Assembly: GCA_047495785.1 (NCBI GenBank)
Contig: JBLDXI010000010.1
Location: forward strand, 620,001-684,000
Source of the DNA: Lepidodermella squamata
Taxonomy: Eukaryota > Animalia > Gastrotricha
DNA: 64,000 bases
Reading direction: 5' to 3'
Part shown: positions 2,707 through 55,969 of the stretch, piece after piece
Layout: each line of letters starts with the position of its first letter
Position numbering within the stretch: position 1 is the first letter of the stretch
The notes under the pieces: generated by a model
Told to the model about the DNA's origin: nothing
Databases searched by the model: none
What the model saw: the letters and a program-made list of their open reading frames with translations, nothing else
Translations under genes and position numbers: made by a program

Positions 2707-4044
2707 ATGAAAGCTTTGCGATGTCAGCCTGTTCTCATTTACATTCTGCTGATTCATAAGTCTCTAACTAACTCGACCAAGCTTGTTCTTGATTCAAATG
2801 ATGATCCCAATTTTATTGGCAGCCGTGATCGTCTACTTCAAGACCGGTTTTTCCGATTGTGTCCTATAGCAACGGCAATTAACCTGCCCTCGGCATGGCA
2901 ACTCGAGACCGGGAATTACAGTTCCCCAATTTTAACAAGGCTAACTTCTCATCTTTTGCAAGTCAATTTGGTCAGCGATGTTGATATGAGGTATCACTAC
3001 CAAGAATATTCATATTGCTAAAGTCTGATCTAATTAATGTTGAAGCATGATGGCTGCGATGAATTTAGCTATGAATTGGGAAATTCCTTGCATGCCTGAA
3101 ATAAGGGCGGATCTCTTACCTGGCTACGAGAATCTATCACAGGCCATATTGGATCGAATACAGTTTTCGATTCCCGCAGATTCTGTTTGGTGGCCAGATA
3201 TGCAGCATATCAACGCAGTTGGAGATGTGTCACGGCCTTTAAGAGAGTAAAGCCTTAAACCTAGGTCTTTAGATAATTTACTCATCTAGCTTCGCTTTCC
3301 TTCATTTTCAGAGAACGATATATCCGAGTGCGCCCATTTCATAGGCGCGGATTTCGGTTCCAAATCAGTTGTATTCGATCTTTCACTTCTCTCTGCTACG
3401 GCTTTAGCTTCACAAAGTTCCCTTTCGATCAGGCCACCTGCACATTCGAATTTGAGCACGAAAATCGCGCGAGTGAGGCATCAATCGTAATAGAAAAGGT
3501 TGACGTTAACGAAGACTACTCGCCGGTTCGTGATGACGATATCTGGGTATTCGTTTCCTACAACGGGTCAGTTGTAAATAAAGCAGGATATGATCACGCA
3601 ACCTGTACGCTTGTTCTGAAACGAAAGTATCAATATTACGTCGCAAATGTTTTCGTGCCGTCAATTTCCTTGTTTCTTCTTCAAATATTCGCTTTGGTTA
3701 TGGATCCTAGCCACCCTGATCGCCCGACATTTTGTATTACAGTTAACCTCTCCATGGCTGTCCTTCTGACAATGGTCTTCGATCTAATTCCACGGACGTC
3801 TCAAGAAGTGTATCTCATCAACATTTTAGTCTTTTTTATGGTTATTTGCGTTGTCCTAACTGTATACACTCTTGTTACGAACTACATTGGAGATATGAAG
3901 TTCGCAAAAGCTGTATATCTCGCGCGAGGCTATTGTAAAGGCGGTGTTCGATTTATCCGACTTTGTGATCTTGGGACGTCTTTTTTCGCCTTCTGGATGG
4001 CAACTGGAGCGATACTCTACTACGGCAAGATGATGATCTCCTGA
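2707..4044 (+). CDS. Cys-loop channel subunit, subfamily A copy 2; exons 2707-2990, 3046-3246, 3312-4044
   Basis: Tandem paralog of 435-1746 with the same motifs and intron positions (2991-3045, 3247-3311). Confidence 0.9.
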
Positions 4045-4230
4045 TCCAGTAATACCGGATGTATAGAATGTAGAGAACTCTCAAAACGGCTTTGCGCAAT
4101 CGAAGTCAACAAGCGAAAAGCAAAGAAGACACCTCAATTGATCAATATGTTGCCTATCTTTATTCAGCTAAAGAGCTAAACCATTCGGCCTGATGAAAAG
4201 ATAAAATAAAGACCAGCCTCGAAAGTTTAG

Positions 4231-7200
4231 TTATAGACGCTTAGATAGCCGCAAGCTACCTAGTCGAGAGAAGAATCCAGTTTTGCCTTTGGCAGTGTTT
4301 TTCAGATCATCAGTGACTGTGCGATACAATGTCCCAACAGTTTCGTGACGACCCTCCAGCAAAGCAACATTCATCGCCGTGAGTCCAAGAGAAGTTTTCG
4401 CGTCTACATCAGCTCCAAGTTCCAATAACAGCTTCAGAACATCTTGATGCCCATGTTTAGAGGCAGCCATAAGTGCCGTGAAACCATTCCATTTCTTAGC
4501 ATTCGCAAGCACCTTAGGGCCACCTATTTCCAAGATCAGTCTCGCAATCCCAACATGACCATTATTGCAAGCGATATAAAGAGCTGACACGCCACTGTCA
4601 TCTCGAACCAAGAAATCAGCTCCGTTTTCAAGAAGCAACTTCACAACAGCTAGGTGACCATTTGCGGCAGCAATGACTAGTGGGCTTCGGTTATCCTTAT
4701 TGCCAATATTGAAATCCGAGCCTAACGCAATGAGGGAACCGACAAAAGCTGAATGACCACAAGATGCAGCTATGTAAATCAAAGAGTTCTGATTCCGGCT
4801 TATTTTTCTCACTCGGTTGTAGTCGAAAAACTGCGCCTTCTCAACCAGGCTTCGAAGGACGGAGTCGTGGCCGAAAAATGCGGCAAGAACGAGACATTCT
4901 GAGATACATTCAGAGTTGTTTTGAACATTAGCGCAAACGCTATGAGCTTGCCCATTTATCGCAGCCGAAAATACATAGTCTGTTAAAGAAACGGAATAAT
5001 GCTCAGCAAAGAGAAGTCGAGTAAGAGCTGGTCTGAGATCCGAACAGTTGAAAGGGCCCGTGTTCGATATCAGTCGAGTTTCCGGGAATCTATCGCCGAG
5101 GAAAGTTTCCGCTGGAAGCTTGTTGTGAAATCGAGCTCTAAGAACCAGAACTCGAATTTCTCCTGGCTCCAGCATAGCCTTATGCCTCATGAGTAGTTCT
5201 GCACATTTCAAGTGGCCATTGATCATAGCCAGCCATAGAGCTGTTTCGAACAATCGATTTGAGGAATGCAACACAGAAACGGGGGCGTAAGTCAAAATCA
5301 AGCTTAGAGTCTCAGTGTCGCCATTTTTCGCTGCTAAGTGCAAAGCTGATGAACCATCCTTATCAGTGCCATCGAGCATTGAGTTTATGTTGTTCTCTGA
5401 ATCTTCTAGGATTGAACGGACAACCGTAGTCATACCTCGATTCACAGCCAGCATGAAAGGTGTGAGCTCTCGTTCGTAATCTTTGGTGATGGGAATTCTA
5501 TCGGCAAAATATCGCCTCGCCATTAATGACTGGATTGTATTCTGGTTACCGCTTTCGATAGCCAAATGCAACGCTCCTTTACCTCGATCGTCGACAAGTT
5601 CCGAGAGGTCTCTCAAACTGGATTCATCATTCAAGAATGCATGCTGGACAGTTGCGTTTTCTCGCACGATAGATACAAAGAATGAATTGATATACCAGTG
5701 AGAATCTTTCGATTTTAAGGCATTTTTTCTAAGGATGGAGTAAACACTGTTGTAGCCGATGGATAGGAGCTTGCCAGCAATTTTCACGAGGTACTCGATT
5801 GCAAAATTTCGCATCACACCATTCTCATCGCGCTTCAGCAACTCAGAATTGGCTAGAAGATTCAAAACCTCGCTCTGAGAGGCAAGTTGCAGCATTAAAT
5901 CCTCACTATCTGCTAAATTTACGATTATATCGATAGTAGCAATGCATTTTCTGGTGATTGCTACTTCCATGATAGTCTCGCCTTTAACCACCGGGTAGTT
6001 AGTAAAGTAATTCAACCGGGATTTGTCCAACTCATGACCTGAAGTCATCAAATCGAGCAGAAGTGTGGATGAAACCAGTGAATGTATACGGTAACCATGA
6101 TGTTCGAAATTGGTGACAAATCCCATTGAAACCAATTTCTTGCAGATTTTAAGCGTTTCTTCTTTCGACAATTGCCATAGGAGAGCCAAATCTTCAAGAG
6201 GAATTACAGCATTTTTACCAAACACTAGAAAAACGTTCAGTAGTTTTCTGTAGCCAGAAAAATCGCCGCTTCTAACCAGGCTCATAATCAAGTAATTATT
6301 GTCAGTTTCCGAAACATTAACGGTGAAACCGTCGAGTAAAGCCATGTAAATTCGTTTCATCGATTCCACTTCAGGGCTCGATTCGATCGAAAATGCATCC
6401 TTAATAATTTGTGACATCGCGCTTGCTAAGATTGGCATCCCGCAGCACATTTCAATCAGTTCAGGAACCGCTACATCAGCTTTCGGTCCGACAAGCATTC
6501 GATTGATAAAGCCGCTATCCAGTCGCCGAATTTTGACGAACTGAGAGAAAGCACCGGGTGACTCAGTCCGACTTCGAGATATTACGATCGACCTGATGTT
6601 ATCCGATATTTGAAAGACGGTACTCAAAATCTGCTCGATTTTGTGATCATGACTAACGTCATCAAAAACAACCAAGCATATCGAGCTTGAAAAATTGAGT
6701 TTGAAGAAACTTCGAAGTGCCAGGATTGACGGTTTGCCCTTGTAGCCACCCGCTTCCCGTAGACCGAATAAATCGGCTACTAAATCGAAAATTATACTGG
6801 CTTTTGTAAGATTCTTAGGGAGCTGAGAGCCGTTAATCCAAAGTACTGATGAAATGTTGAAGTTCTTGTGAATAGCTCGATTTCTTAGGACAGTTTCAGC
6901 TACTAAGGTGGTCTTGCCAACTCCAGGTTCACCGTAAACCAAAAGCGAGCACGGTTCATGGTTTTCCAGGCATAAATCAGCAAGAGAAGCTTCGATTAGG
7001 ATTTCTTCGTCTGGTCTCGAGAAATAATTGTCCAATTTTCCCGGGTAACAACCAACCAAATCTGGGTATCTATTATAAAGAAAAATAATCGAAATGTTCA
7101 ATCATGAAATTGCTGTCGCTACCTTCCATTTACTAAAGATTGTGGCGATGTATTCCGTTCCAGCATGTCTGCGAATTTTTCATACTTGATAATTCTCAGG

Positions 7201-7537
7201 ACAGTAAGGAAAATTGCCCATCGTTCGCAGCTTTTCGTGACATGATTGTCGACCAGTAATTTTAGTTGGCCCAGATCTGTTCTGGCTTTCTCAATCTCGA
7301 AAAGTTCATCACTCGAAATGACACCCTTCTCCCTCAGGATGATACCCAGGCGGTAAAAGCCGAATGATTTGCATAACGGTTTCCCATATGAAAAGATATG
7401 CAGCGATTCCAACCATGCTGAGTGGAAATCTGGGTCAAGTATTGCCATGAAAACGCAATTCTGCGGAGATTATGTTCGTTAATGAAAGAACCTGTCATGA
7501 ATGAACTCCTTAATTGCTTTTTATCACCTATACTCAT
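4231..7537 (-). CDS. Apaf-1-like STAND protein: CARD-like death fold, NB-ARC, ankyrin repeats; predicted exons 7537-7400, 7352-7123, 7069-4231 (about 1068 aa, start codon uncertain)
   Basis: CARD-like LREKGVISSDELFEIE...WAIFLTVLRIIKYEKFADML; Walker A GEPGVGKT; Walker B LVVFDDV; sensor VISRS; GMP; winged helix LALLWQL..LVSMGFV; IHS at the MHD position; many ankyrin repeats (SALHLAAKNG, SPLVIAAANGH, TALMAASKHGH). GT-AG intron 7122-7070; putative AT-AC intron 7399-7353. Confidence 0.85.
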
Positions 7538-9735
7538 TAGCGTTATCAGTATGCTCTTGCCACTGAAATTAATTAGCAAGTTATCTCCTCAGTTTTTTAC
7601 GCCATATACGGTTTAACAACGGCACTATGTTCGTAATTTTGAAGTGATAATAGATTGCATGCAGGAGAAGAGGTATCGTCCATTAGATTGTAGGATTGAT
7701 TGCGTCTTGAATCTGCAGACTTCAAATCCAATAATTTTCATTCCCCATCAACTGACTCGACCGCTCGAGTGCCAGTTATTGGAGTGATGACGAGAGGCAC
7801 AAAAAGCGGCGCCACTTCAGTAAAATCGAGCGTTTTATCACTTGGAATTCTATTATTATCCGCACTTGTGCTGCTATCGGAATTTTTAGATTAGAAATAA
7901 AGCAGCCTCTTTCGGCATAGCGATAATAGTCCTCTGGTTATCTATAACGCCAAATAACCCGTGTATTCAGCACTGATAAGCCATTTCCTGTTTTCAAAAC
8001 AACCATTTCGTTGTTTTTGTCCTTAAATGTGCTTTCATTGATGATTTTCACATTTTTGGCTCTCCTCGACATTACGGATGGCCTATATGGCCGTGGCATG
8101 ATTAAGCGCATTGAATCGCGTGACAGCTAATTTCCTTTATTTGAAAAGATTCTGTCACGACTTCTCCCTTGTATATAATGAAAAATCTTTGTGCCACATT
8201 CATTTTTACGAAAAATCGAATTTTCGTAATTTGCTCAGGCTATCAGCTAATTTTCTTTGCGCGTAAGAAATGCGGGGAGTCTCGCAGCATAATAATCCCT
8301 AAACGATCAAGACTCTTATTACAAGTTGAATCCCATAAGGGGAAGAGCACATTAGGATAATGAAGCCCGGTCATTTTAATGCTGGTTTTGTCATTCATTC
8401 TAGGCTATAAAGCTTTTTCCAACTCAGATAGTTTATTTTTTTGCAGACTCAAGAATGTTGCAACACTAAATACCCTTAATGTAATTACCAATCATCACTT
8501 ATAGGGGAAAAAGTATAGGAATGCAAAGCCGGTAGAAAGGAGGCGCCATAAAAAACTAATGTTATCATTTATTACGCGGCTTTATTTAGGTTACTTATTT
8601 TACAGAGGGCTCTAGTATCGCTATTACGCTTAGCATGAGTGTTTGTTGTTTCGACCAGATAATAACAATAATAAATAAATATACGTTTTTTCCGCCTCAC
8701 TCGCGCTTGTACAGCCGCAGCAGAGCGATTCGGCCGCTGAATTCACATAACCAAAACCGCAAAAAGCGAGACTAGCCTCTTTTGTTAATGTTGGCTAAGT
8801 ATTAGCTATATTATAGGCAAGCACGCGCAGTGCGGCTCGTTCGCGCACGTTGCAGGTATGCGCAGTAGAACAACGCGATGATAGCGACTTGTTTGCGGCT
8901 TGTGCCTCGCTATGAAGTATTAAACAATAATATTAGCGGCCACGGCCTCATTATACGTCATCTTTCAACCACTATAACAACAAACGGCTTATAATATAAC
9001 GACCTTCATCGTATAATTTCCTCATTTCCGCAGCTTGCCATGGCGTTCAAGTAGAAAAAACGATACATTATTGTTTCGCATCTATTTTCCGCTGCTTGCT
9101 TATTCTTCGAAATTATAGGCGCCACCTGCAGGTTGACCCCCGGGCATCTAGCGTGCCGCAATTTGTAAATATAATATACGGGCTGGTAGTTATGCGTGCA
9201 TTTCACGTTAAATGAAAAATAACGCATGCGAAACCCGCGGCTAAAAGTGTGTGTGAAATGAGCATTTAGTAATAGCTGTGATGAGCGTTCGCCCTCTGAG
9301 CCTAATGCTTAATTTATTCCAAAACAAATGTAGTTGCCGTGCTTACTACAAATTGATTGCTCATATCATGATTGTGTAAATTTAGCTGTTTTCAACTTAA
9401 TTCAACCTTTCAAATTTACCTTAACAATTCAGCAGTATTTTGCTCTCATAGAGTGCGATTTTTTCTACTACCTCTAGGACTTGAGACCGTGATGTGCGAC
9501 TGATTTCATCACGATTTTATACAATTTTCACACCGTGCGATCGATTTTAATTAGGATATAAATTTATCGAAGCGGTAGTAGAATGCCATTATATTTGCGT
9601 GATCACTTTGCGCCAAAAAGCAAAGTCTTATTATTTGAACAAAAAGCAGTGCACCTATAAGCTAGAAACTATACATTTTCATGCGATACTATGCTTTCGA
9701 ATTTTTGTACATATTTTTTCATTATTTTTAGAGGC

Positions 9736-12119
9736 ATGTCAAAATTGTCAGATGTTATCGCTCTTGCCGAGCGGCAGTGTCCGCCCGGCGACGAAATGGC
9801 AAAAGCTCGATTTCTCTTCAATTGGCTTTGCTCAGAGGCCGTTGTTAGCGACTACAACGCCGCTATTGAAGGTTTTACTCGTTACGCTGCAGCCTCCCAA
9901 CCGCCTAATGACGCAGATCTGGCTGTTGAAGTCTTCATTCTCGGTGTTCAAATCGGCAGGACGACTTACTCGTCAGCATACAGCCGCCTCTGCACATTGG
10001 CTGGTTTGCAAGTTCGCCAAGTTTGCGGGTCTTTACGAGGGGTCGGCTTGAGGTCACTCAACCATAGCTCGATTCGGCGGCAGTCGTCTGTATCATCCGC
10101 CCTAATGACAACCCACTCTTGGTCGCTTTTGAAAGTTGGCGAGAATCGTCAGGTTCTAGTTTGCTGCCAATGTGCCGTACAAAGGGCAGCGCCTATCGAG
10201 TTTTCTGAGGAAGAGGAAAAGCAGAAAGGAGATGAAACTGTCGCTGTAGTCGATGATTTTTACTTCGGTGCTAAACCAGAAATTTTCGCGTTCACTCACT
10301 TCCCGACGGAAACAGCAACTGATGTCAATTTTTCCCTCTTGGATCGGGTATTTACCCAAGAAGATTACTGCCTCTCGCCTCTAGTCACATCAGCTCTTTA
10401 TACACTTGGCCTGGAATTCACTAATTCTTCCCGTAAATCTTCGATTCTGGTGACTGACGCGAAAGACCTCGAGCTCGGCCTTGATTGGCGGAATGAAGCC
10501 GACGCGAGGAGAGCCGCCGAATCGCGCGATTTTCGTTTCCTTTTCGTAGCAACGGACCCAATTACTGGTGAGAGGTTGAAAGACGAAGAAATGCCGAAAA
10601 ACCTTGGTGACTACGTCATGTTTGAAGTTTCGGAGCGTGGCTTGTCATTCTCGCTTCGATTTCCCGAAAACGGCTTTTACCGCCTTGTAGCCTTTGCATC
10701 AAGTGAACGAAACGACTCATCGAACCAGCAATTACGTCGATCTTCAATTGCCCCGTCTCAGATGAATCAAAGAACGACCTCTGAGGCCGGCAAAGTCTTT
10801 CGAGCCAAGAAGTCAACTTCATTTCTGGTTCCGCAAACAAGCACCCTAGTTCCGCTATGTGAATGGTCGGTAGAGGTGGATAGGCCACCCTTGAAGGACC
10901 CTCAAGATCCCTTCCCGAAATGCCAAGCCTCTCAAGTTTGGGGTCTGCCTTCGTTTGTTACGAACAGATTCGGAGTTTCGAATAGCCATGGCAAGTTCAG
11001 GGCAAAAATTGAGGCTGATGAGAATGGAATTGCGGAAATTTACTTCCAACTCAGTAAATCCTGCATATTCTCAGGTAGGTTCCAGCCTGATTATTCCGTC
11101 TCAAAAATGTAAAAAATGTTTTTTTTGCAGCCAAGCTGAAAAGATTCGACGAAACTAACCCGGTTGGAGCGAGTGTTTTTCATCGGATTGTAAAGAATAC
11201 AGCAGTTTTCACTGTTTGCCTCTCGCTTGAGGAAGATGTTACTGAGGTTGGCCTTGAAATCTTCGCTAACGATCCTAGCTGCGACAAGACAACTTTATTT
11301 GGCTTCGCCCAGTTCTTAGTGGTCGGTCCAGTTAAACCCATAGGAGAACAACCCTTTTGCCTCCGACAACTTCTACTTTATCCTGCATTGACCTCAAATG
11401 TTCTAGGTTTTCACGGAACTTACTGTTCGGATCTTGGGATTCAGCCTTACACTCACCCTGATCCTTTGATAACCGTAACTTCAGCCAAAGAACTCGAATT
11501 GCAATTTAAGACAACCGAAGACCAACCTCTTCGCCTCATCGTTGCTTTGTACCTCGTGAAAAACATGGTTGCCCCTAATCAACAGGGCTTGGTCGATGTT
11601 AGCATGTTCGCAATGCATCAGACAATCGATTCTAAGACGCTGGCAATTTTATGCCGATTTCCTCAGAGAGGGACTTACAAACTACAATTATTCGCTGCTA
11701 AGCACGGCACTCAAACTGATTTACCGGCCGTTTGTACCTATGCTGTGTTCGTGAATAACAAAACAGCAGTAAGTTCCCCGTTTCCTAAGCAACTGTCTGC
11801 CTGGCACGGCGGGTATCTATTCGAGCCAAGAGTTGGAATTCTTGAAAGAACAAGCAAGAACCCGAATGCCAACTTCAAGCTTAAGCTCCCGACTGCGAGG
11901 AAGGTTGCCGTAGTCGTACGATCCTCGCCTAAAGAACGAATCGTTTTACTGAACAAAACTCAAGATGCGGAGGGTAACTTCATGTGGGAAGGCATGTTAC
12001 CCCTCGAACCAGTCGCTCCTCAGCCAGAAATCGCCGTCATGGCTAACCTGGAACGCGAAAGAGACGAAGCGAGTTACAGCACGCTATTGATTTACAATAC
12101 CCAGGAAATGTTCGAGTGA
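9736..12119 (+). CDS. Hillarin/kyphoscoliosis-peptidase-like protein (transglutaminase-like core plus Ig-like repeats); intron 11075-11130; an upstream exon is possible
   Basis: KARFLFNWL, YSRLCTLAGLQVRQVCG, HSW, DDFYF..PE.F..THFP, FPENGFYRL, FPQRGTYKLQLFA, GYLFEPRVGIL. The intron joins ORFs 9691 and 11319 in frame. Confidence 0.8.
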
Positions 12120-12232: not shown

Positions 12233-14665
12233 TCAGCGGTTGGACATACTAATGCGTTCTTTGAGGATTGGCCAGTACCAAGTTATCGAAGTTGAACTCG
12301 AAATCGTGAAAAAGATGAACGCAGTGAATATTTGCTGCAGAACCATCCTTCCTCCCAGAGTTAGTATGATGAAGATTCCAGCGATAAACAAACAAGAGAC
12401 ATTGATGAGCCCGAAATTTGCCAGTTTTAATTCCTGCGCCAATGAGGACACGGCAGTATTTTTTTTGAGTATTTTCGAATATTTTATGCGAACGTTATTG
12501 GCCACGAAAAATCCAGCTGCTAACAAAATTAGGTTTTCAGCTGCGAGAATCGAAAGCAGAACCGAAAAATTGCCATTTTCACAAGTTGTAATGATATATT
12601 CGGTGAATACATCTAACGCAGGATCGTAGATTATCTTGTTTCCCCCAGCGACCAAGCATTGTATAGGATCAACCAGAAGCCAAATCATAAGATAAATAGC
12701 GGTTACAACTGAAGCGGCTATCGGGATCAAAACAGGCCGGGAATCGTATTCCTCGAGCAGCAGCTGTAGCTTCGCTTCAGAAGCATCACGGTCATTTTTG
12801 ACCTCCTTTCGCCCTTCTCTCTGCTCTGGCCGGACAATTACAAAGCGCGAGCCCACCTTGTGACTACGGCCCTGTTGATGCATGGTTGGCTTGGTTGATA
12901 CATGGTCTGTTGAATACGTCTTGACTTCGTTTATCACCATAGCTCCGTTTCCGAAATTTTTCCGAATGCGAATCAACTTCAACCACAAGCTAATAATTCG
13001 ACTCAACAGAGTTGCATTCATGCAAATTAGCCCCATAGCCCCAAGTATCAATCTGGCGTTGCTCGATTCCTTAGCGCTTGGAGCCGCAAATAGTACCGCT
13101 GAAGTGTCAATAGAAAGGAATGAAAATGTGCTTAAAGCAGGCAGTAAATCGGCTCGTATATTATGCCGATTTTTGCTCAGAGAAAGACCAATAAAAAGGA
13201 TCTGGGCACATGCTGTTAGTATTGCTAACACTAGAATGATCAGGAATTCAGCATACGATACTTGCTCCATTACGGTTTTCCTGCTAGCCTGATCCCTTGG
13301 GATGTTACCGCTCCAAATATTCCAAGTAAATTTGTCACTAGAAGACCGAACGCTCAAAGCTGGACTGTTGGCTATCGATTTAAATATTATTCTGGTGTTA
13401 TTCTTCCTAGTCCAATAGTTTATGACCGAAATGTCGTACATTTGCTGGCCAGTAATATTGCTGAAGCGTAACCGACCGATTCTGAGGCCCGCAAGGTCGA
13501 TTTCCATCATACTTCTATTCAACGCGTGGCTTACGACATCCGGCTTGTGATGATAATCGAAAAGAGTCATGTTACTTGTCAGCCTCAACGTTCGATCTCC
13601 TTCATGCAAAGCGAAAACAGCGAACATCGCCATATCATAAAAAATGTACCTTGAGACATCATCAGGAGCTCGAGTGAAATTTAGCCTTTTGTTTAATTCA
13701 GAATCGAATTTTTCTACAGACATGCCCAGGCTTGATGAAGCCGCATTGTCTTGCGTTGCGACAGTTGTCGGCCCTATAAAAAAGGTGATTTCCTGCTGTT
13801 TGCTGACAATTTCACGAGTGCATCCTGGCAAAAGAGGATCTGGGACCAGTGGAATTGCAGAGAAATCAGTCAGCAGCCCAGCGTTTGAAAAGAAAATATA
13901 TCTGGGCGCTGCCAGACCGGAAAAATATGCAAGGCAGTAGAACTTCCACAGTACTGCTGTTGTAGCGGTATAAAGGACAATAATCCGAATGTCTTTGCGT
14001 ATGATTTCGTCAATGACATTTTGGTCTATATCCATTGAAATGCTGAATACAGGCACTGAAAGATTGCGTTGCAACGCCTTGCTGTAAATTGTGAGAGATA
14101 CAGTGTAGTCGACGAGATTCTGAACAGTCGCTATTACAGCCAGTCTCCGCCATTTCGCAACAGTTTCGACAAATAGAATAAGAACCTCACTATTCGGGTC
14201 GATGACATTCAGTGTCAAATAGAGGTTGGGATATAGAACCCGATTTGAAAGAACCGATGAAATGCAAGCTCCACTCATCATCACGGCATTCAATTCATGA
14301 AGAATGGGACCGACGGCTTTGCAGCTTTGAGATAGTTGTCCTCCTACAATGATTGGTGATTTAATAACAGTGCTCTTGTTCGCGTCGGAGACAGGTTCCA
14401 AGTTTTCGTAAAAGTTAGCTAGAATACTGGGTGCGGCGTTTCCCATGCGTTCGTCTTCGAAAACTGGTTCGAGCTGGTAATCGGCCAGAATGTCGCTTCT
14501 GTTGTTTGCAATTTCAAAAACGAGGCTGACGACTGCTCTGAATGTTTCACCGAAGCGAGGAGGTCGGCCTGTAAAGGTTGTCGCAGCAAGAACTTGCATC
14601 CTATGTTGCTTTATCGCACAAACTGATGAGATCATCACAATGGCTGAGATTAAATGATTCAACAT
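12233..14665 (-). CDS. Orphan GABA-B-like class C GPCR (Venus flytrap plus 7TM), intronless
   Basis: 810 aa; signal peptide, RSDILADYQL, LSNRVLYPNLY, KWRRLAVI, FYCLAY, YDMA, W..NIPRD, then seven hydrophobic helices; no cysteine-rich domain. Confidence 0.85.
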   Translation of the reverse strand: MLNHLISAIVMISSVCAIKQHRMQVLAATTFTGRPPRFGETFRAVVSLVFEIANNRSDILADYQLEPVFEDERMGNAAPSILANFYENLEPVSDANKSTVIKSPIIVGGQLSQSCKAVGPILHELNAVMMSGACISSVLSNRVLYPNLYLTLNVIDPNSEVLILFVETVAKWRRLAVIATVQNLVDYTVSLTIYSKALQRNLSVPVFSISMDIDQNVIDEIIRKDIRIIVLYTATTAVLWKFYCLAYFSGLAAPRYIFFSNAGLLTDFSAIPLVPDPLLPGCTREIVSKQQEITFFIGPTTVATQDNAASSSLGMSVEKFDSELNKRLNFTRAPDDVSRYIFYDMAMFAVFALHEGDRTLRLTSNMTLFDYHHKPDVVSHALNRSMMEIDLAGLRIGRLRFSNITGQQMYDISVINYWTRKNNTRIIFKSIANSPALSVRSSSDKFTWNIWSGNIPRDQASRKTVMEQVSYAEFLIILVLAILTACAQILFIGLSLSKNRHNIRADLLPALSTFSFLSIDTSAVLFAAPSAKESSNARLILGAMGLICMNATLLSRIISLWLKLIRIRKNFGNGAMVINEVKTYSTDHVSTKPTMHQQGRSHKVGSRFVIVRPEQREGRKEVKNDRDASEAKLQLLLEEYDSRPVLIPIAASVVTAIYLMIWLLVDPIQCLVAGGNKIIYDPALDVFTEYIITTCENGNFSVLLSILAAENLILLAAGFFVANNVRIKYSKILKKNTAVSSLAQELKLANFGLINVSCLFIAGIFIILTLGGRMVLQQIFTAFIFFTISSSTSITWYWPILKERISMSNR

Positions 14666-15133: not shown

Positions 15134-17677
15134 TCAGATATCAACCCTCACAATAGCTCTTCTGCGAAGTCTCGGTAAGAACCAAGTCATCGATGTTGTT
15201 AGCGAAATTATCAAGCTCATGAAAGCAATGACGAGATTCTGTTGAATCGGCCGCTCGCTCAACATCAGGATAATCAGCACACTCGCAATCATTAGACAAA
15301 AGGCATTGATTTGCCCGATAGCTAAAAGTTCAAATTCTTGCTTTCCGATAATAACAGTGGCTTCGCTTTTGAAGATGTAAGGATAGTTCTTCCGGAGCTG
15401 ATAACTAAGGAAAACCCCGGTGAGTAGAATAAGCCCATTGAAGGCTATTTGAGTAGATATCCAGACTGGTGTTTTCTTTCCCTCGCAAATTGTTACCAAG
15501 TACTCGGTGACAACATCAGCTACAGGGTCATGACCCTTTGCCCCATCCGTGCGTTCAATACAGGTCAGATGATCAGCTAGGAGCCATATCAACAGGAAGC
15601 AAGAAGCCGCTGAAAACGCAGCCGCCAATGCCCAAAATGGGATGTTCGATTTCGCCTCTTGACAATCGGCAATGATCTGTTCTATGTGGGCTATATCAAG
15701 ATGTTTTGCCTCAAACTTAATTGAGCTGCTAGCTCGGGCTGGCTCGTGCCCGATGGCCACACTGGCCCGTTTGGAGACGGTTGACTGCTTTCTCATGACT
15801 GACAAACGCTTCGTTGTCGTATGAAATGAGCCAGGCCTTGTGGTTGTTGACGGGCGAACAGCTTTTTGATACTGCTCGTAACTCTGGGAAACCTGTTGAC
15901 TGCTATTCAAACCCAGCCAGAGAAACAACGACCGACTGAACAAAAGTGTATGAATCGAGGTCAAGCCGATAGTCAGAAGTATGATACGTGTATTTGCGAT
16001 GCTTTCGACGTTATTTGAAGCAAATAATATCGCTGAAATATCCGATATGATTCCAGCGATAGTCCCTAAAAATTTTAAGAGCGGAACTCTATAACTTTCT
16101 TCAACTTCTGCCTGTTCGAAATCCGTCTTCAATATTGTGATAGCTGTGTAGATTTGAAAACAAATTATCGCAATGCCAATCACTAGAACAGTGATAAAAG
16201 CTTCAGTTGAAACTTGATCGAAGCTTTTTGCAAGAATAGCTTGATCCTTCGGAATCTGGCCATTCCAAAGCTCCCAGTTGAAAAGAGAGCCTTGAACCGG
16301 TAGCAATTTGTAGCTTTCATAAAAAGGCGAGCCAGCCAGTCGAGGATCTGTTGGGGACAATTTGTAGATAGCTTTCATCCCGTTCCGCAGGTTCCAATAC
16401 GTTATCGCCGAAATATCAGCCAATTGTTGACCGTTGACCTTACTATATTGAAGGTTGTCGATTCTCACGCCCTTCAACTGCATTTCCATCATTGTCTCAT
16501 TGAGAACTCGCACGATTAATTGTGGCTGATACTGATAGTCGAAAAGAGACATGTTCCGCTTTATCAGCTGTTTGTTTGTTTCTTCCAGAGCGTAAACCCC
16601 AAACATTGCCATGTCGTAGAACACATAACGTAGGACATCATCTGGGGGTCGTGTGAAGCTGAGCCTTCGGTCCAGCTCAGCATCAAAATCATAGACATTG
16701 AAGCCTAAAGTCGAGTTTTCTTTGAAATCAGCTTTGGCTGCTCTTAGGGAAGGTCCAACGAAAAAGGTTATCATCTGCTGTTGAACGACTACGTCCCTAG
16801 TGCAACCCCTGACGTTAGGATCAGCTATTTCTGGGATTGCAGATGGGTCTGATAGAATGACCACGTTACTGAAGAAAACATATCTCGGGCCCGAGATCCC
16901 AGAGTTGAAAGCCAAACAATAGAACTTCCATAGCACAGCCGTAGTCGCTGTGTACACTACAACAACTCGAATGTCATTCGCAATGATCGTGTCGATCGTC
17001 GTCTGGTCTATGTCTATCTGAATGCTGAATATTGGGATGGAGAGATTACGCTCGAGAGCTCTGGTGTAGATGGCCAATGATGCTGTGTAGTCATTCAAAT
17101 TTTGAACAGTCGTGATCACGGCAATTCGTTTCCATTTTGCGATGTTTTCGATGAAGTGGACAGTCACTCTTCCATTTGGGTCGATAACGGAGCATGTTAA
17201 GAAGAGATTAGGATACAACGCCCTGTTCCATAAGATCGGTGACAGACAAGCTCCGCTTAACATGACTACATTGACCTTATCCAACAAAGGCCCGACGGCT
17301 TTGCAACTCTGAGATAACTGGCCCCCAATCGCTATTGGAGATTTGTAAACCAGAGTTCCATCGGGTCCGTAGAACGGTTCTGAGTCTTTGAAGTACCCTG
17401 CCACGATTCTTGGCGCAGCGTTTCCTAGCAACTCATCTTCGAAAAAGGGCTCCAGCCGGAAGTCAGGCAGAATGTCGGCTCGTTTGTTAACTGCATCAAA
17501 GACGAGGCGAATTACCTCCTTGAAGGAATCACCATATCTAGCCGGGCGGCCGGATAGGGTGGTCATTGCAAGAACTCTCATATTTTTCGGCTTGGCTGAT
17601 GCTTCAACCGCAAACCAATGTAAGAATACAATCAGCAAAAACAGATGCATTCTCGTTGATAGGTCGAAATTTCGCAT
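15134..17677 (-). CDS. Orphan GABA-B-like class C GPCR, tandem paralog of 12233-14665
   Basis: 847 aa; shares GGQLSQSCKAVGP and YTATTAVLWKFYCLA; 7 TM helices. Confidence 0.85.
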   Translation of the reverse strand: MRNFDLSTRMHLFLLIVFLHWFAVEASAKPKNMRVLAMTTLSGRPARYGDSFKEVIRLVFDAVNKRADILPDFRLEPFFEDELLGNAAPRIVAGYFKDSEPFYGPDGTLVYKSPIAIGGQLSQSCKAVGPLLDKVNVVMLSGACLSPILWNRALYPNLFLTCSVIDPNGRVTVHFIENIAKWKRIAVITTVQNLNDYTASLAIYTRALERNLSIPIFSIQIDIDQTTIDTIIANDIRVVVVYTATTAVLWKFYCLAFNSGISGPRYVFFSNVVILSDPSAIPEIADPNVRGCTRDVVVQQQMITFFVGPSLRAAKADFKENSTLGFNVYDFDAELDRRLSFTRPPDDVLRYVFYDMAMFGVYALEETNKQLIKRNMSLFDYQYQPQLIVRVLNETMMEMQLKGVRIDNLQYSKVNGQQLADISAITYWNLRNGMKAIYKLSPTDPRLAGSPFYESYKLLPVQGSLFNWELWNGQIPKDQAILAKSFDQVSTEAFITVLVIGIAIICFQIYTAITILKTDFEQAEVEESYRVPLLKFLGTIAGIISDISAILFASNNVESIANTRIILLTIGLTSIHTLLFSRSLFLWLGLNSSQQVSQSYEQYQKAVRPSTTTRPGSFHTTTKRLSVMRKQSTVSKRASVAIGHEPARASSSIKFEAKHLDIAHIEQIIADCQEAKSNIPFWALAAAFSAASCFLLIWLLADHLTCIERTDGAKGHDPVADVVTEYLVTICEGKKTPVWISTQIAFNGLILLTGVFLSYQLRKNYPYIFKSEATVIIGKQEFELLAIGQINAFCLMIASVLIILMLSERPIQQNLVIAFMSLIISLTTSMTWFLPRLRRRAIVRVDI

Positions 17678-46896: not shown

Positions 46897-48944
46897 ATCA
46901 CATTTTTTCTCAGGCGGCAAAACAGCATTCCTCCGCATCCTATTTGACGTGCGTGCGGATAGAACACGCTTTGATCTATCTTTGTCGTTCGCTTTCAACA
47001 TCCACGCTTGATATCAATGAAGCTTGTTTGAAAACTGTCAAAACGAGGAAACGGCACTTTCAGCAGGATAGACCTGTTCTTTATGATCGCAGCAAGTACC
47101 ACGCAAAGGTCAATCCGTTGACAGTTTTTCCGTCAACAACTTTTCAGAAATATGATGAGTGAGAGTTTTGAAACGCAAAAAGCCTCTTTCCTTCCTGCAT
47201 TGATGGTGGCTGGTAAGTATTACACTCTCTGTCGCATCATTATAAACTTACCTTCTATAGGAACGTTTCGAATTTTCCATGAGAAGTTATTTCTGTCTAC
47301 CATTGGTATTGTGTCTCGTTTATGCTGCAATGAGTGATCAAAGAGGGAATGGTACTACTGTAAAGCTACTCATGTACATGCCAAGAATCGGTATCGACTT
47401 GAGACGCCAACTGGCTCATAATTTTGCCATTCAATACGTCTTAAATAAAGTCAACAGCCGATCAGACATATTGCCTGGTTATCGGATTGAAACCGATCTG
47501 GTTGAAGAGGCAATAGGATTCCAGGCGGTGCAAAAGTTGTTCGACCATCGCCGCAATATGTTTTCAGAATTTCAACTCCCGGTGATCGTTGGGCCAGCTT
47601 TTTCCTCCGGCTGCAAAGCTGTCGGTACACTGCTGCACCACTTGGACTCTATCGCTATCAGTACCACATGCGTTGCTTACTTTTTGACTGACCGAATGAT
47701 TTATCCGAATTTGTTTCTATCCATGGCAAGTTCGGATGCGTCCGCAGTTCCTTTTCTATCTATGATGAAAAATATTGGGAAATGGAACAGGTTTGGAATA
47801 ATTTCGATACCGAGCTCAGCTTTAGACTACGCCGCAGCTTTCAGCCTTCACGATAAGGCGCTATCCAGGGGATTCGAAGTACCTCTCTTTACTCTAGTAG
47901 ACCGCATAGATCAAGACTTTATCACATTTTTTCTCAGGCGGCAAAACAGCATTCCTCCGCATCCTATTTGACGTGCGTGCGGATAGAACACGCTTTGATC
48001 TATCTTTGTCGTTCGCTTTCAACATCCACGCTTGATATCAATGAAGCTTGTTTGAAAACTGTCAAAACGAGGAAACGGCACTTTCAGCAGGATAGACCTG
48101 TTCTTTATGATCGCAGCAAGTACCACGCAAAGGTCAATCCGTTGACAGTTTTTCCGTCAACAACTTTTCAGAAATATGATGAGTGAGAGTTTTGAAACGC
48201 AAAAAGCCTCTTTCCTTCCTGCATTGATGGTGGCTGGTAAGTATTACACTCTCTGTCGCATCATTATAAACTTACCTTCTATAGGAACGTTTCGAATTTT
48301 CCATGAGAAGTTATTTCTGTCTACCATTGGTATTGTGTCTCGTTTATGCTGCAATGAGTGATCAAAGAGGGAATGGTACTACTGTAAAGCTACTCATGTA
48401 CATGCCAAGAATCGGTATCGACTTGAGACGCCAACTGGCTCATAATTTTGCCATTCAATACGTCTTAAATAAAGTCAACAGCCGATCAGACATATTGCCT
48501 GGTTATCGGATTGAAACCGATCTGGTTGAAGAGGCAATAGGATTCCAGGCGGTGCAAAAGTTGTTCGACCATCGCCGCAATATGTTTTCAGAATTTCAAC
48601 TCCCGGTGATCGTTGGGCCAGCTTTTTCCTCCGGCTGCAAAGCTGTCGGTACACTGCTGCACCACTTGGACTCTATCGCTATCAGTACCACATGCGTTGC
48701 TTACTTTTTGACTGACCGAATGATTTATCCGAATTTGTTTCTATCCATGGCAAGTTCGGATGCGTCCGCAGTTCCTTTTCTATCTATGATGAAAAATATT
48801 GGGAAATGGAACAGGTTTGGAATAATTTCGATACCGAGCTCAGCTTTAGACTACGCCGCAGCTTTCAGCCTTCACGATAAGGCGCTATCCAGGGGATTCG
48901 AAGTACCTCTCTTTACTCTAGTAGACCGCATAGATCAAGACTTT
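46897..48944 (+). repeat. 1024-bp direct tandem duplication (46897-47920 and 47921-48944)
   Basis: Three ORF pairs are offset by exactly 1024; no mismatches seen; ATC microhomology at the junctions. Confidence 0.92.
47279..47971 (+). CDS. Truncated duplicate of the 48303 receptor: signal peptide plus partial Venus flytrap (230 aa)
   Basis: Identical to 48303 up to RIDQDFI, then reads into the repeat junction. May be a pseudogene or an assembly artefact. Confidence 0.4.
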   Translation: MRSYFCLPLVLCLVYAAMSDQRGNGTTVKLLMYMPRIGIDLRRQLAHNFAIQYVLNKVNSRSDILPGYRIETDLVEEAIGFQAVQKLFDHRRNMFSEFQLPVIVGPAFSSGCKAVGTLLHHLDSIAISTTCVAYFLTDRMIYPNLFLSMASSDASAVPFLSMMKNIGKWNRFGIISIPSSALDYAAAFSLHDKALSRGFEVPLFTLVDRIDQDFITFFLRRQNSIPPHPI

Positions 48945-50621
48945 ATCTCCACGTTAGTCGAGTCAAAATTGAGAATATTTGTCGTCATAATATCCCCAGC
49001 GGTCACATTTTCCCAGTTTCTTTGTGAAGCGTATCGAGTTGGAATCACAGGGTCAAGATATGTTTTTTACGTACCAGTCACTGCAGTAACCATATCGCCA
49101 CCCGCCGGTTGTACCACAGAAGTCTTATTCGAACAGTACAAGCAAACATTCTTCACGGGTATAACACTTCAACCTGAAAACATGACAAGGAAAACGGATC
49201 TTGGCGACACGGCTGGGGAATTCATGCGACTCATGGTAAACTCTACTCAAGTGATGGTAGATGATACAATTTTAGCGTATGTCTACCGCGATGCTCTATA
49301 CATGGCTCTGATGGTTCTGAATACGACCGATTATCGATTGAAACGTGATTACGGTTTAAGCTTGTTGAACTATAGCCAACATCCTGCATTGGTCTCTCGA
49401 GTTGCAAAGGACTCCCTTTTCGATACTAGGACTGTAGGGGTGAGAGTTGGCGAAATTTCATACTCAAGGGATGGGCAGATAGTTGGAGATGTGGCAATGT
49501 ATAGCCAGTTCAGCCCGAAAACAGGCTTAGTTAACAAAGTCGAGTTCCGACAGCAGCGAGAGAACTCACAGAATGGGTCAGATTACTACCTTGAGATTTT
49601 AAGACCGATTACTTGGATTCGTGGCGCTCCTCCTAGAGACATGCCTATAACAGTCATCAATCGGATGACGCTGTCGGATATCTCAAGTTGGGTTATTTGG
49701 GTTTTAACTGGATTAACATGCATCTTACAGTTGATTTTATTTCTCATTTTTCTGCGAAATAAGGAGCGGCGAATAGTCTATAAACATTCAAAAATACTTG
49801 GATTATTCGGATGTGTTATTCTTGACGCATGTTCTGCTTTGTTTGTCATTGACAGAGATGAAAGAAGCTCTGTAGTTGCGAAAGCGGCAGAGTTTCTTCG
49901 AATTGTTGGATTGTCAATCGTGTTAAGTGTCGCATTCCTGCGTATTCAACTGACTTTTGCCCATTGTAAGCAATTGATCCGTCAAGCTACCGCGGAGACC
50001 CCTGTTGCATCAATGTACAGTGGGAATAGAAGCCAAATGAATGTACGTTTCGACCCGAAATGCCGTTCGGTACTAGACAAGGATGAAGTAAAGAGATCTG
50101 CAGTGATCATAGCCTGCACCATTGTCCTGATGTCTGTTTGGTTCGGAATAACTGCTTTCAACTTCTCAGCTGTCGAAGCTTTCTCGCCTCGCTATGACGA
50201 AGAATCCGACAGTGTAACAAGAGGCTACTACATTAAGTGCGCGGCTAAGCCTGATTCCCGATTGGTAGGATGGTCCTTAATGGGCTTCATTGGCGCATTT
50301 TTCCAAGTAATGCTGATTCTGAGCTGTATGATTTGCTACCAACTTCGGCAAAGAAAATCTCTTGCTGAAGCCTACCGGGAGTTCAAGTTGAGTTGTTTGG
50401 CAGTCATTTTCAGCACGACGATTCTCCCGGCAGGTATTCTGATCGAATTTCTAGTGAGTGATAATCCCACCTCCCAACAAATTGCGGCTGCGGTATTATG
50501 CTTGACTGTTTCCTCATCATTCTCGTTGATATGGAGTCATCGTAACTTATTTCCCACTCAATGCTTTTGGAAGGTGCAACTCTTGCAACACGCCTTTGCT
50601 TCTTCTTCTTCGCGACCATGA
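48303..50621 (+). CDS. Orphan GABA-B-like class C GPCR, intronless
   Basis: 772 aa; VNSRSDILPGY, IVGPAFSSGC, YPNLF, FLCEAYRVGITG, WIRGAPPRD, 7 TM helices. Confidence 0.88.
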   Translation: MRSYFCLPLVLCLVYAAMSDQRGNGTTVKLLMYMPRIGIDLRRQLAHNFAIQYVLNKVNSRSDILPGYRIETDLVEEAIGFQAVQKLFDHRRNMFSEFQLPVIVGPAFSSGCKAVGTLLHHLDSIAISTTCVAYFLTDRMIYPNLFLSMASSDASAVPFLSMMKNIGKWNRFGIISIPSSALDYAAAFSLHDKALSRGFEVPLFTLVDRIDQDFISTLVESKLRIFVVIISPAVTFSQFLCEAYRVGITGSRYVFYVPVTAVTISPPAGCTTEVLFEQYKQTFFTGITLQPENMTRKTDLGDTAGEFMRLMVNSTQVMVDDTILAYVYRDALYMALMVLNTTDYRLKRDYGLSLLNYSQHPALVSRVAKDSLFDTRTVGVRVGEISYSRDGQIVGDVAMYSQFSPKTGLVNKVEFRQQRENSQNGSDYYLEILRPITWIRGAPPRDMPITVINRMTLSDISSWVIWVLTGLTCILQLILFLIFLRNKERRIVYKHSKILGLFGCVILDACSALFVIDRDERSSVVAKAAEFLRIVGLSIVLSVAFLRIQLTFAHCKQLIRQATAETPVASMYSGNRSQMNVRFDPKCRSVLDKDEVKRSAVIIACTIVLMSVWFGITAFNFSAVEAFSPRYDEESDSVTRGYYIKCAAKPDSRLVGWSLMGFIGAFFQVMLILSCMICYQLRQRKSLAEAYREFKLSCLAVIFSTTILPAGILIEFLVSDNPTSQQIAAAVLCLTVSSSFSLIWSHRNLFPTQCFWKVQLLQHAFASSSSRP

Positions 50622-53596: not shown

Positions 53597-55969
53597 ATGG
53601 CGAAAGGGTGTTCCTTTCAAGCTGCAATATTACTTCTGCTCTATAGCGTTACAAATGGGCAAAGAGAGAATGCAACTGCTGTCAAGCTACTTATATACAC
53701 GCCAAGACTAGGAATCGAGCCCAAACTAGTTCAAGCCTATAATTTCGCAGTGCAGTACGTGGTGAGCAAAGTCAACAGTAGAGCAGACTTCTTCCCTGGT
53801 TACCGCATTGAAACTGATCTAGTTGAAGAATTTTACGGATTTCAAGCTGTGCAAAGGTTGTTGGAACATCGCCGGAAGTCCGCGACTGAATTCCAACTAC
53901 CATTGATAGTCGGCCCAGCCTTCTCAAACGGATGCAAAGCTGTCGGGCAACTGTTGCATCTCTTGGACAGTGTCGCTATCAGTACGCTGTGCGTTGCGCC
54001 CTTCCTCACTGACCGAAAGACCTATCCTAATTTGTTTCTTTCAATGGCAAACTCGGAATCATCCGCAATTCCATTCCTATCTATGATGAAGAACATCGGA
54101 AAATGGAACAGATTCGGCATTATCTCAATCCCGAGCTCAGTTTCGGATTACGCAATCGCATTCAACCTTCAAGATAAAGCGTTGTCAAAAGGATTCGATA
54201 TACCGTTGTTCACCCTTGTCGATCGAATAGATCCTGAATTCATCTCTACTGTATTAGCTTCTAAATTGAGAATATTCGTCATAATAATTTCAACGGGAAG
54301 CTTCGTTTCAAAATTTCTTTGCGAAGTTCATCGAGTCGGAATCACGGGTCCCAGATATGTGTTCTTCACCCCAGTAACTACGCTCAGTATGAACCCACCC
54401 GAAGATTGTTCAGTGGAAATTCTTATCGAACAGTACAAACAAACGTTTCTGGGCGGATTAGCCTTTTTGCCTGAAAACATGACCAGGATAACCGACCTCG
54501 GCGACACCGCTGGGGAATTCATGCGACTCATGATTAATTCGACCCAAGTTACGGTAGATGATACAATTTTAGCGCACGTTTACCGCGATGCTTTATTCAT
54601 GGCTCTGATGGCTCTGAATACGACCGACTATCGATTGAAACGGGATTACGGTTTAAGCTTGTTGAACTACAGCCAACATCCTGCATTAGTCGCTCAGATT
54701 ACAAAGCAGGCCTTGATCGACACGAAAACGATAGGTGTCAGAGTCGGCGAAATTTCCTATTCGAAAGACGGGCAAATAGTCGGAGATATGATGATGTTCG
54801 GACAATTCAACCCGCAAACTGGTTTCGCTAACAAAGTTGCGTTCCGCGAAGTCAGGATCAACCCAGCGAATAAGCTGGACGATCGAAATTTCTATTATGA
54901 TATATTAAGACCTATCACTTGGATACGAAATTCCCCTCCGCGGGATACTCCAATTATAAAAGTAGTGAGATTGAGCTTGCCACTACTTTCAAGCTGGATC
55001 ATTTGGGGGTTAACTGGAGCAATTAGCGTTAGCCAAGCGATAGGCTGCATCATGATTTCGTTCAACAAAGGTAATTTCAGTATCTTCATCAAATCAAAGC
55101 TCCTCGGAATATTAGGATGTATTGTGCTGAATTCAGCCGCTGCATTGTTTGCTGTTGAAAGAGATGAGACAAGCTATTTGATTACGAAAGTTTCAGAATT
55201 TCTTCGAGTAATAGGGCTGTCAATCATCTTCAGCGTTGGAATTTTTCGCATCAATTCAATTTACGCCCACAGCAAGCGTATCATTCGGCAAGGTACGGAA
55301 ACACGCCTTCAGCCGAGATTATCATCGAATCGCGAGTCCAGAAATAATCAAGTGAATGTGATTTTCGACCCAGAATGCCTGAAGCTGATCGACAAATCGA
55401 TTGTCAAAACGTCACTGCTAACCATAGCCGGCGTCGTTGTTCTGATGGTTGTTTGGTTTGCGATAACTGACTACAGCTGTACATCAGTTGAAGCTTTCGT
55501 ACCGCGATATGACGAGGAATCAGACAGTATAATTGAAAAGTATTTCATAAGGTGTGCCTCCGAAACTTTTATACAAACGATAGGGTGGTCCTTGATCGGA
55601 CTTATCGGTGCTTTCTACCAAGTGTTGCTAATACTAAGCGTTATACATTGTCACCAACTTCATCGAATGAAATCTTTGGCAGAAGCGTACGGGGAATTTA
55701 AATTGAGCTGTTCTGCTGTTGTTCTGGGCGCAACATTCCTTCCTGCTGGAATTTTAATTGAATTCCTCCTCGGCGCTAATGCAGTAACCCAGCAAACAGC
55801 TTCAGCTGTTATCTGCTTGGCTGTATCAGCTGTATTTTCGCTCATATGGAGCTACCCAACAATCTTCTCCATTCTATTTCCTCAGAATAGTCGTAGTTCC
55901 ATTCTATCGGCGCGATCCTCTTTTCAGCTAAATAACCATCAAATAACGGTCATCAACCCGAACAGATAA
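53597..55969 (+). CDS. Orphan GABA-B-like class C GPCR, intronless
   Basis: 790-aa paralog of 48303 with the same motifs. Confidence 0.88.
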   Translation: MAKGCSFQAAILLLLYSVTNGQRENATAVKLLIYTPRLGIEPKLVQAYNFAVQYVVSKVNSRADFFPGYRIETDLVEEFYGFQAVQRLLEHRRKSATEFQLPLIVGPAFSNGCKAVGQLLHLLDSVAISTLCVAPFLTDRKTYPNLFLSMANSESSAIPFLSMMKNIGKWNRFGIISIPSSVSDYAIAFNLQDKALSKGFDIPLFTLVDRIDPEFISTVLASKLRIFVIIISTGSFVSKFLCEVHRVGITGPRYVFFTPVTTLSMNPPEDCSVEILIEQYKQTFLGGLAFLPENMTRITDLGDTAGEFMRLMINSTQVTVDDTILAHVYRDALFMALMALNTTDYRLKRDYGLSLLNYSQHPALVAQITKQALIDTKTIGVRVGEISYSKDGQIVGDMMMFGQFNPQTGFANKVAFREVRINPANKLDDRNFYYDILRPITWIRNSPPRDTPIIKVVRLSLPLLSSWIIWGLTGAISVSQAIGCIMISFNKGNFSIFIKSKLLGILGCIVLNSAAALFAVERDETSYLITKVSEFLRVIGLSIIFSVGIFRINSIYAHSKRIIRQGTETRLQPRLSSNRESRNNQVNVIFDPECLKLIDKSIVKTSLLTIAGVVVLMVVWFAITDYSCTSVEAFVPRYDEESDSIIEKYFIRCASETFIQTIGWSLIGLIGAFYQVLLILSVIHCHQLHRMKSLAEAYGEFKLSCSAVVLGATFLPAGILIEFLLGANAVTQQTASAVICLAVSAVFSLIWSYPTIFSILFPQNSRSSILSARSSFQLNNHQITVINPNR

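Follow-up and report, generated by a model that had tools for sequence, protein, structure and literature searches.

A CARD-like head, an NB-ARC module and ankyrin repeats combined in a gene of the gastrotrich Lepidodermella squamata

Apaf-1-type switches have the textbook build CARD-NB-ARC-WD40, and animal NOD-like receptors (NLRs) that of NACHT-LRR. We analyzed a gene in a 64,000-nucleotide stretch of the genome of Lepidodermella squamata (GenBank assembly GCA_047495785.1, contig JBLDXI010000010.1, positions 620,001 to 684,000 of the forward strand). The whole stretch is referred to below as the window, and positions are counted from its first letter. The gene lies on the minus strand and encodes a head of the death-fold type, an Apaf-1-type NB-ARC module and ankyrin repeats at the place where Apaf-1 and Dark have WD40 propellers, a combination that is real, conserved and expressed.

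Gene structure and transcription

Two open reading frames (ORFs) follow each other on the minus strand, one of 956 codons (7101-4231) and one of 109 codons immediately upstream (7448-7119). With 7123 joined to 7069, the frame continues (phase 2) in a two-exon coding sequence (CDS, 7448-4231) of 3165 nt, with 1054 codons and one terminal stop, for a product of 1054 residues. The GT..AG ends of the sole intron (7122-7070, 53 nt) were read directly from the sequence. Coordinates of the individual parts are collected in Table 1.

The stretch is covered by two public runs, here called X1 and X2. X2 is DNA-like and covers it in full. X1 is catalogued merely as a guessed RNA run, and neither expression level nor strand nor exact ends can be read from its assembled contigs. 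One X1 contig skips exactly positions 7070-7122. The resulting joint, 7069/7123, has a depth of 15.8 and 77 nt on its shorter side, and its ends read CT..AC on the plus strand, that is, GT..AG on the strand of the gene. Coverage by X1 runs from about 4128 to 7487 and is zero at 7488-7700, where X2 covers fully; moreover, a SMART template-switch oligonucleotide is present in X1 as a loose end. On account of the exact intron skip, the oligonucleotide end and the zero depth at 7488-7700, we took X1 to be a cDNA-type run. The joint and these cDNA marks show that the gene is transcribed and that the 53-nt intron is removed. An initial annotation, made from the letters alone, had presumed that the two exons are joined in the mRNA, and this was borne out.

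The 5′ limit given in that annotation, 7537, was not. The stretch 7488-7700 lacks X1 depth, the frame of the ATG at 7448 is closed by a TAA 24 nt upstream of it, and in a relative on the metagenome contig L001 (see below), the initial methionine aligns with M1 of the model that begins at 7448. Based on the RNA coverage, the upstream stop and the aligned methionine, ATG 7448 was taken as the start. We also considered an extra 5′ mini-exon beginning at an ATG at 7537, for which a frame-keeping splice into codon 7 can be drawn on paper, from a phase-1 donor located after 7492 to an acceptor located before 7429. This mini-exon has neither RNA coverage nor a counterpart in the relative and was rejected. 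The X1 joint 6452/6520 (67 nt, non-canonical ends, 22-nt side) and many joints of the "opposite strands" kind were set aside as library artifacts. In the narrow space between two convergent genes, one X1 contig extends left of 4128 with 29 letters that have no match in the genome; these could be a splice in the 3′ untranslated region or a library artifact.

Domains of the predicted product

In Pfam, the product matched NB-ARC with 30.9 bits against a gathering cut-off of 23.5, versus 12.4 bits (E 0.14) for NACHT. A Dark_WHD match was weak, at 19.5 bits under a cut-off of 27. The motifs of the module follow the order of Apaf-1: Walker A (GEPGVGKT, residues 155-162), Walker B (VVFDD, 242-246), an arginine-bearing strand with a sensor-1-like R (ISRSR, 272-276) and GMP (319-321). 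The winged-helix domain (WHD) contains the stretch FGKNAVIPLEDLALLW, followed by the histidine H438 in RIHSL. The set of motifs is therefore complete and in the Apaf-1 order, as first annotated. In an alignment of eight sequences (A2), comprising the gene product and seven database matches, the three P-loop glycines, the lysine, the GxP proline and the WHD phenylalanine and histidine were invariant. ATPase motifs in this intact state would fit a working switch. When a profile of five family members was compared with all solved structures, Apaf-1 came first (E 2e-10, over Apaf-1 residues 126-464), and CED-4 (3.6e-10), plant NRC4 (1.3e-5) and NACHT proteins (about 1e-4) were also found. A single-sequence search with the module reached Apaf-1 at an E of 0.68 only, and hence we regard the module as highly divergent.

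The head (residues 1-109) had a sole family match in Pfam, CARD, with 14.2 bits (E 0.044) over profile positions 25-83 of 85. Its ten best protein-language-model (PLM) neighbors were all CARD clusters (0.93, 196/256 features), and CARD clusters were likewise the neighbors of the relative's head (0.88). An AlphaFold2 model from the single sequence was poor, with a predicted local distance difference test score (pLDDT) of 54.7, and shape searches with it in Foldseek and the Atlas were uninformative. Modeling from an alignment, A1, gave six helices with a pLDDT of 71.7 (84-91 over residues 30-90). When this model was compared with the PDB by Foldseek, the first 34 rows were almost exclusively CARDs (TM score 0.5-0.7), including those of Apaf-1, NOD1, ARC, NLRC4, CARD8, RIP2, caspase-9, Dark and ICEBERG. 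We further employed VIA-align, which exhaustively aligns the model with 48,161 representative chains and is independent of Foldseek. The CARD of NOD1 was best (Z 10.3, root-mean-square deviation 3.2, 93 residues aligned), ahead of those of ARC (8.9), NLRC4 (8.7), caspase-1 (8.6) and Apaf-1 (7.9), which preceded CED-4, CED-3, Dark and Dronc. Of the top 50 entries, about 46 were death-fold domains, mostly CARDs. Judging from these models, the head very probably has a death fold and probably belongs to the CARD subclass. The N-terminal CARD that characterizes Apaf-1, Dark and CED-4 is thus predicted here by fold and not by sequence threshold. The CARD-like N-terminus of the initial annotation stands on the AlphaFold2 fold, the structure lists and the PLM neighbors, and falls short in its Pfam score.

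For the linker that follows the NB-ARC module (residues ~446-600), Pfam reported no family outside the NB-ARC and ankyrin models. The stretch annotated as a helical linker is present, and it is probably helical, as suggested by the Atlas model of the relative. In that model, the linker resembles an alpha-solenoid; its nearest PLM neighbor is a TANC2 cluster of WHD plus ankyrin repeats (0.89, 153 features). Both likenesses serve as leads only. The ankyrin repeats of the predicted product are unambiguous. Ank_2 scored 233.9 bits in Pfam, with its best stretch at residues 808-902 of the long ORF (906-1000 after splicing), and the PDB search returned ankyrin-1/2 at an E of 9e-72. Repeat cores could be located in two blocks, of about 4 repeats (~601-745) and about 6 repeats (~826-1025), on either side of an 80-residue spacer, in agreement with the two blocks initially described. 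We found no tandem DNA repeats under the arrays. In Pfam, there was no match to WD40, the C-terminal 450 residues being ankyrin repeats, nor to LRR, TPR or WHD_TANC1. The C-terminal tail of 29 residues is basic.

Relatives, selection and genomic surroundings

A word-indexed protein search returned nothing with the NB-ARC half and, with a profile of the head, only P0013, which is the relative's own head. We then used an exhaustive phmmer search of the NB-ARC half against 1.84 billion cluster representatives. This gave seven matches, one of them close: P0001, a protein of 888 residues (E 1.8e-32) encoded on L001. The neighbors of P0001 on this contig are polycystin, PAN and Abi genes, which indicates that it belongs to another animal. 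BLASTP aligned P0001 with the gene product end to end (28% identity over 961 columns, E 4e-93), through the linker, both ankyrin blocks and the spacer; the basic tail is not conserved. Directly upstream of P0001 lies an ORF for a head of 110 residues, 24% identical to the head of our gene, and a phase-2 donor occupies the equivalent place in L001, where removing 53 nt is one option that restores the frame. As judged from sequence, the whole architecture, including the intron, is conserved in this 28%-identical relative, and a chimeric gene model is thereby ruled out.

The other phmmer matches differ in build. P0002, P0004 and P0007 are NB-ARC-WD40 proteins and matched weakly. P0003, a metagenome protein of 1456 residues, has a weak TIR_2 match (residues 136-216, E 0.0076), with an NB-ARC-like module after it and a long array of ankyrin repeats. 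P0005 and P0006 both start directly before the NB-ARC, and no upstream head exons were found on their contigs. P0005 (L005, 367-1602) begins with MGNKLIK, a possible N-myristoylation start, while P0006 (L003, 1821-3851) has a long insertion in the nucleotide-binding domain (NBD) and a short ankyrin end. The sole candidate from the metagenome locus scan, L002, encodes a bacterial sigma-54-type AAA+ protein that had matched via its P-loop; it was rejected as unrelated.

In X2, the NB-ARC half is present in a second form (5895-6883), which has a depth of about 30 versus about 70 and is 5-10% different. Thirty-five changed codons were listed between the two forms, of which 19 are synonymous and 16 nonsynonymous, with 0 stops. 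H438 is kept, and the listed differences are mostly synonymous or conservative. These codon changes fit purifying selection. The ankyrin half (4231-5894) is covered by a single X2 contig; the forms are either identical there, or the second is more than 10% different, and the latter case would imply a hypervariable sensor.

The window has a G+C content of about 42% and is dense in long ORFs for animal-type receptors, including pieces of Cys-loop channels and five class-C G-protein-coupled receptor (GPCR)-like ORFs, which points to a compact animal genome with short introns. The five class-C GPCR-like ORFs are long and intronless and encode the ligand-binding domain ANF_receptor, which two of them combine with 7tm_3. 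A Cys-loop ligand-gated channel with ligand-binding and membrane regions is encoded by the ORF 3328-4044 (+), which is convergent with the NB-ARC-ankyrin gene and stops about 190 nt short of that gene's 3′ end. A KY-like immunoglobulin-like domain (PF23265, E 5e-10) occurs in the 473-residue product of the ORF 9691-11112 (+). No Rfam family or tRNA turned up when the 64-kb window was scanned for them.

Table 1. Parts of the NB-ARC-ankyrin gene and the class-C GPCR-like ORFs, in window positions
Feature	Positions	Strand	Remarks
Exon 1	7123..7448	-	ATG 7448; residues 1-109, predicted CARD-like six-helix death-fold domain
Intron	7070..7122	-	53 nt, GT..AG, phase 2; joint 7069/7123 in run X1
NB-ARC module (NBD-HD1-WHD)	6061..7026	-	residues ~124-445; Pfam NB-ARC, family profile
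Linker, probably helical	5596..6060	-	residues ~446-600; no recognized family; collinear with P0001
Ankyrin block 1	5161..5595	-	~4 repeats, residues ~601-745; Pfam Ank_2/Ank, repeat cores, PDB ankyrin matches
Spacer between ankyrin blocks	4921..5160	-	residues ~746-825; BLASTP with P0001, LEPGE...FP motif region kept
Ankyrin block 2	4321..4920	-	~6 repeats, residues ~826-1025; Pfam Ank_2, repeat cores
Basic C-terminal tail and stop	4231..4320	-	29 residues; stop codon 4233-4231; from translation
Class-C GPCR-like ORF	12233-14665	-	ANF_receptor
Class-C GPCR-like ORF	15134-17677	-	ANF_receptor
Class-C GPCR-like ORF	48303-50621	+	ANF_receptor
Class-C GPCR-like ORF	53597-55969	+	ANF_receptor
Class-C GPCR-like ORF	57424-59715	+	ANF_receptor

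Interpretation and comparison with known systems

We lean toward reading the gene as one for a tripartite, NLR-like switch protein of the STAND class (signal transduction ATPases with numerous domains). It would combine a CARD-type death-fold head, an Apaf-1/CED-4-type NB-ARC ATPase and a bipartite ankyrin tail, would be opened by a ligand and cluster CARDs, and would be one of a lineage-specific repertoire. The three elements of such proteins, a head, a nucleotide-binding oligomerization domain (NOD) and superstructure-forming repeats, are found here in one polypeptide. By analogy, a ligand-gated, oligomerizing CARD platform would be the most economical reading. If the protein works like Apaf-1, CED-4, Dark and the NLRs, the histidine H438 of the WHD, together with the ankyrin tail, would keep the ADP-bound NB-ARC closed at rest. 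Binding of a ligand other than cytochrome c to the ankyrin surface would open the NB-ARC and be followed by nucleotide exchange. A ring-like oligomer could then assemble via contacts between the NBD and helical domain 1 (HD1), and its clustered CARDs may recruit a CARD-bearing caspase or adaptor. Most likely, the gene encodes one of the receptors in a repertoire for intracellular surveillance that is specific to the lineage, and a role as the core apoptosome adaptor is less likely.

Several of our results weigh against the reading as a CARD-bearing switch. The Pfam CARD score of the head, 14.2 bits, lies under the cut-off of 23.9, the relative's head has no CARD match in Pfam, and searches of the head against the PDB by sequence, both single and with a profile, gave no matches. 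A1, from which the AlphaFold2 head model was built, consists of two sequences only. Every Foldseek E value for the head is 0.6 or worse (0.6-5), and VIA-align Z values of 8-10 may also arise by chance among helical bundles. The weight for the CARD assignment is carried by the single-family make-up of the Foldseek and VIA-align lists, not by Z. Outside the head, APAF1_C/HD2 (PF17908) had no match at E values up to 1, the relative P0001 has N at the second Walker B acid, and no CARD caspase of Lepidodermella squamata was identified.

The features shared with the apoptosome raise the question of whether the gene is the species' true Apaf-1 orthologue, that is, the core apoptosome adaptor with its WD40 propellers exchanged for ankyrin repeats. 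The order of CARD and NB-ARC, the position of Apaf-1 and CED-4 as the best solved relatives of the family profile, the weak Dark_WHD match and the CARDs of Apaf-1, CED-4 and Dark in the structural match lists of the head would all agree with this. However, the module is extremely divergent, with seven matches in 1.84 billion representatives and a single-sequence E of 0.68 for Apaf-1, and the APAF1_C/HD2 match is missing, which makes orthology quite improbable. The initial annotation had spoken of ankyrin repeats replacing the WD40 propellers; this holds for position, as the repeats stand where Apaf-1 and Dark have WD40; the orthologous descent that it implied is improbable. A scaffolding or regulatory STAND-ankyrin protein like TANC1/2, uninvolved in cell death or immunity and with a generic helical interaction module as its head, is an unlikely identity, though less so than an Apaf-1 orthologue. 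The PLM lead from the relative's linker to the TANC2 cluster points that way, TANC proteins have been analyzed as STAND NTPase-ankyrin-TPR scaffolds (PMC5533708), and repeat turnover is not seen at the DNA level in the ankyrin repeats. Conversely, Pfam finds NB-ARC and not a TANC-type domain, TPR are lacking, the structural neighbors of the head are specifically CARDs, and the intact ATPase motifs would suit a working switch.

Fungi and bacteria, in which NB-ARC or NACHT commonly occurs with ankyrin repeats, could be envisaged as donors of the gene by horizontal transfer. NB-ARC with ankyrin repeats is a minority architecture in fungi (PMC4986451), and NB-ARC-WD40 proteins with no assigned source, P0002, P0004 and P0007, are among the weak matches. 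We consider such an origin highly improbable, since the head is of the CARD type with PLM neighbor clusters recorded almost wholly from animals, the intron is conserved with the relative, the composition of the gene is like that of the remaining window, and the phmmer search of 1.84 billion representatives returned no fungal or bacterial protein with an E better than 1e-5. As for an artifact or a decaying gene, whether a chance ORF, a misjoined model or a pseudogene, nothing but the weak Pfam score of the head speaks for it. It is scarcely credible given a frame of 1054 codons with one intron precisely spliced in cDNA, an architecture kept end to end in a distant relative, and an excess of synonymous changes between the two X2 forms.

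Beyond the reading as a single switch protein, we tentatively propose a wider possibility. In place of NACHT-LRR, this animal lineage may have used NB-ARC switches with ankyrin sensors to build its intracellular surveillance, exchanging CARD for TIR heads and vice versa, and the CARD-headed, ATPase-competent member described here might form a caspase-activating ring, like an inflammasome or apoptosome, on a pathogen or danger ligand. If true, this would be an animal parallel to the plant CNL/TNL and fungal NLR systems.

We compared the gene with the systems already described. Plant TNL/CNL proteins share the NB-ARC switch core, as reflected by the match of NRC4 to the family profile (E 1.3e-5), but have an LRR sensor and TIR, CC or RPW8 heads. 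Animal NLRs are defined by NACHT plus LRR, a pairing that the gene product does not have. In fungi, ankyrin repeats occur mostly with NACHT, and a small fraction of NB-ARC is paired with them (PMC4986451). These fungal NLRs are likewise tripartite STAND proteins with an ankyrin-repeat C terminus; their heads are HET, HeLo, PNP_UDP, patatin and similar domains, never CARD, and no head of a fungal type was found here. Fungal ankyrin arrays are also often hypervariable, with near-identical repeats, whereas the arrays of this gene are not. TANC1 and TANC2 (PMC5533708) share an animal P-loop STAND module followed by ankyrin repeats; they contain TPR, which this product lacks, and have no CARD head, and no TANC-type Pfam match was found here.

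Closest in layout are Apaf-1, Dark and CED-4, in which an N-terminal CARD-type fold likewise directly precedes an NB-ARC with Walker A and B, GxP and the WHD histidine. Apaf-1 and Dark have a WD40 propeller as a sensor, in contrast to the ankyrin repeats of this gene, and the product differs from all three in lacking an APAF1_C/HD2 match and in its very high sequence divergence. The initial annotation had left open whether the architecture is already catalogued in animals. A phrase search of the open literature for NB-ARC-ANK found no description in animals and no explicit CARD-NB-ARC-ANK, and we found no paper joining rotifers with NB-ARC in this sense. The principle of exchanging heads and sensors is known. 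Among invertebrate Apaf-1 homologues, paired CARDs, DD, DED and TIR occur as heads, and TPR or no repeats occur in place of WD40; the same set includes expanded Apaf-1/NB-ARC paralogues in Nematostella, amphioxus and sea urchin (PMC2246300). Placozoan NB-ARC genes have WD40 or TPR only (PMC6321704). For a coral, a repertoire in which NACHT and NB-ARC are pooled lists CARD, DED and Death heads and LRR, TPR, ankyrin and WD40 repeats (PMC4083563); this repertoire has been criticized (PMC3879445). Our gene resembles these lineage-specific expansions in the swapping of heads (CARD, DD, DED, TIR) and of repeat sensors. It differs from them in its sensor: the exchanges described there lead to TPR, to WD40 or to no repeats, and ankyrin is listed only for the pooled coral set. 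The gene would be a concrete candidate for asking what triggers CARD platforms that do not respond to cytochrome c, and it adds a new type of sensor to the plasticity already documented for the Apaf-1 family (PMC2246300).

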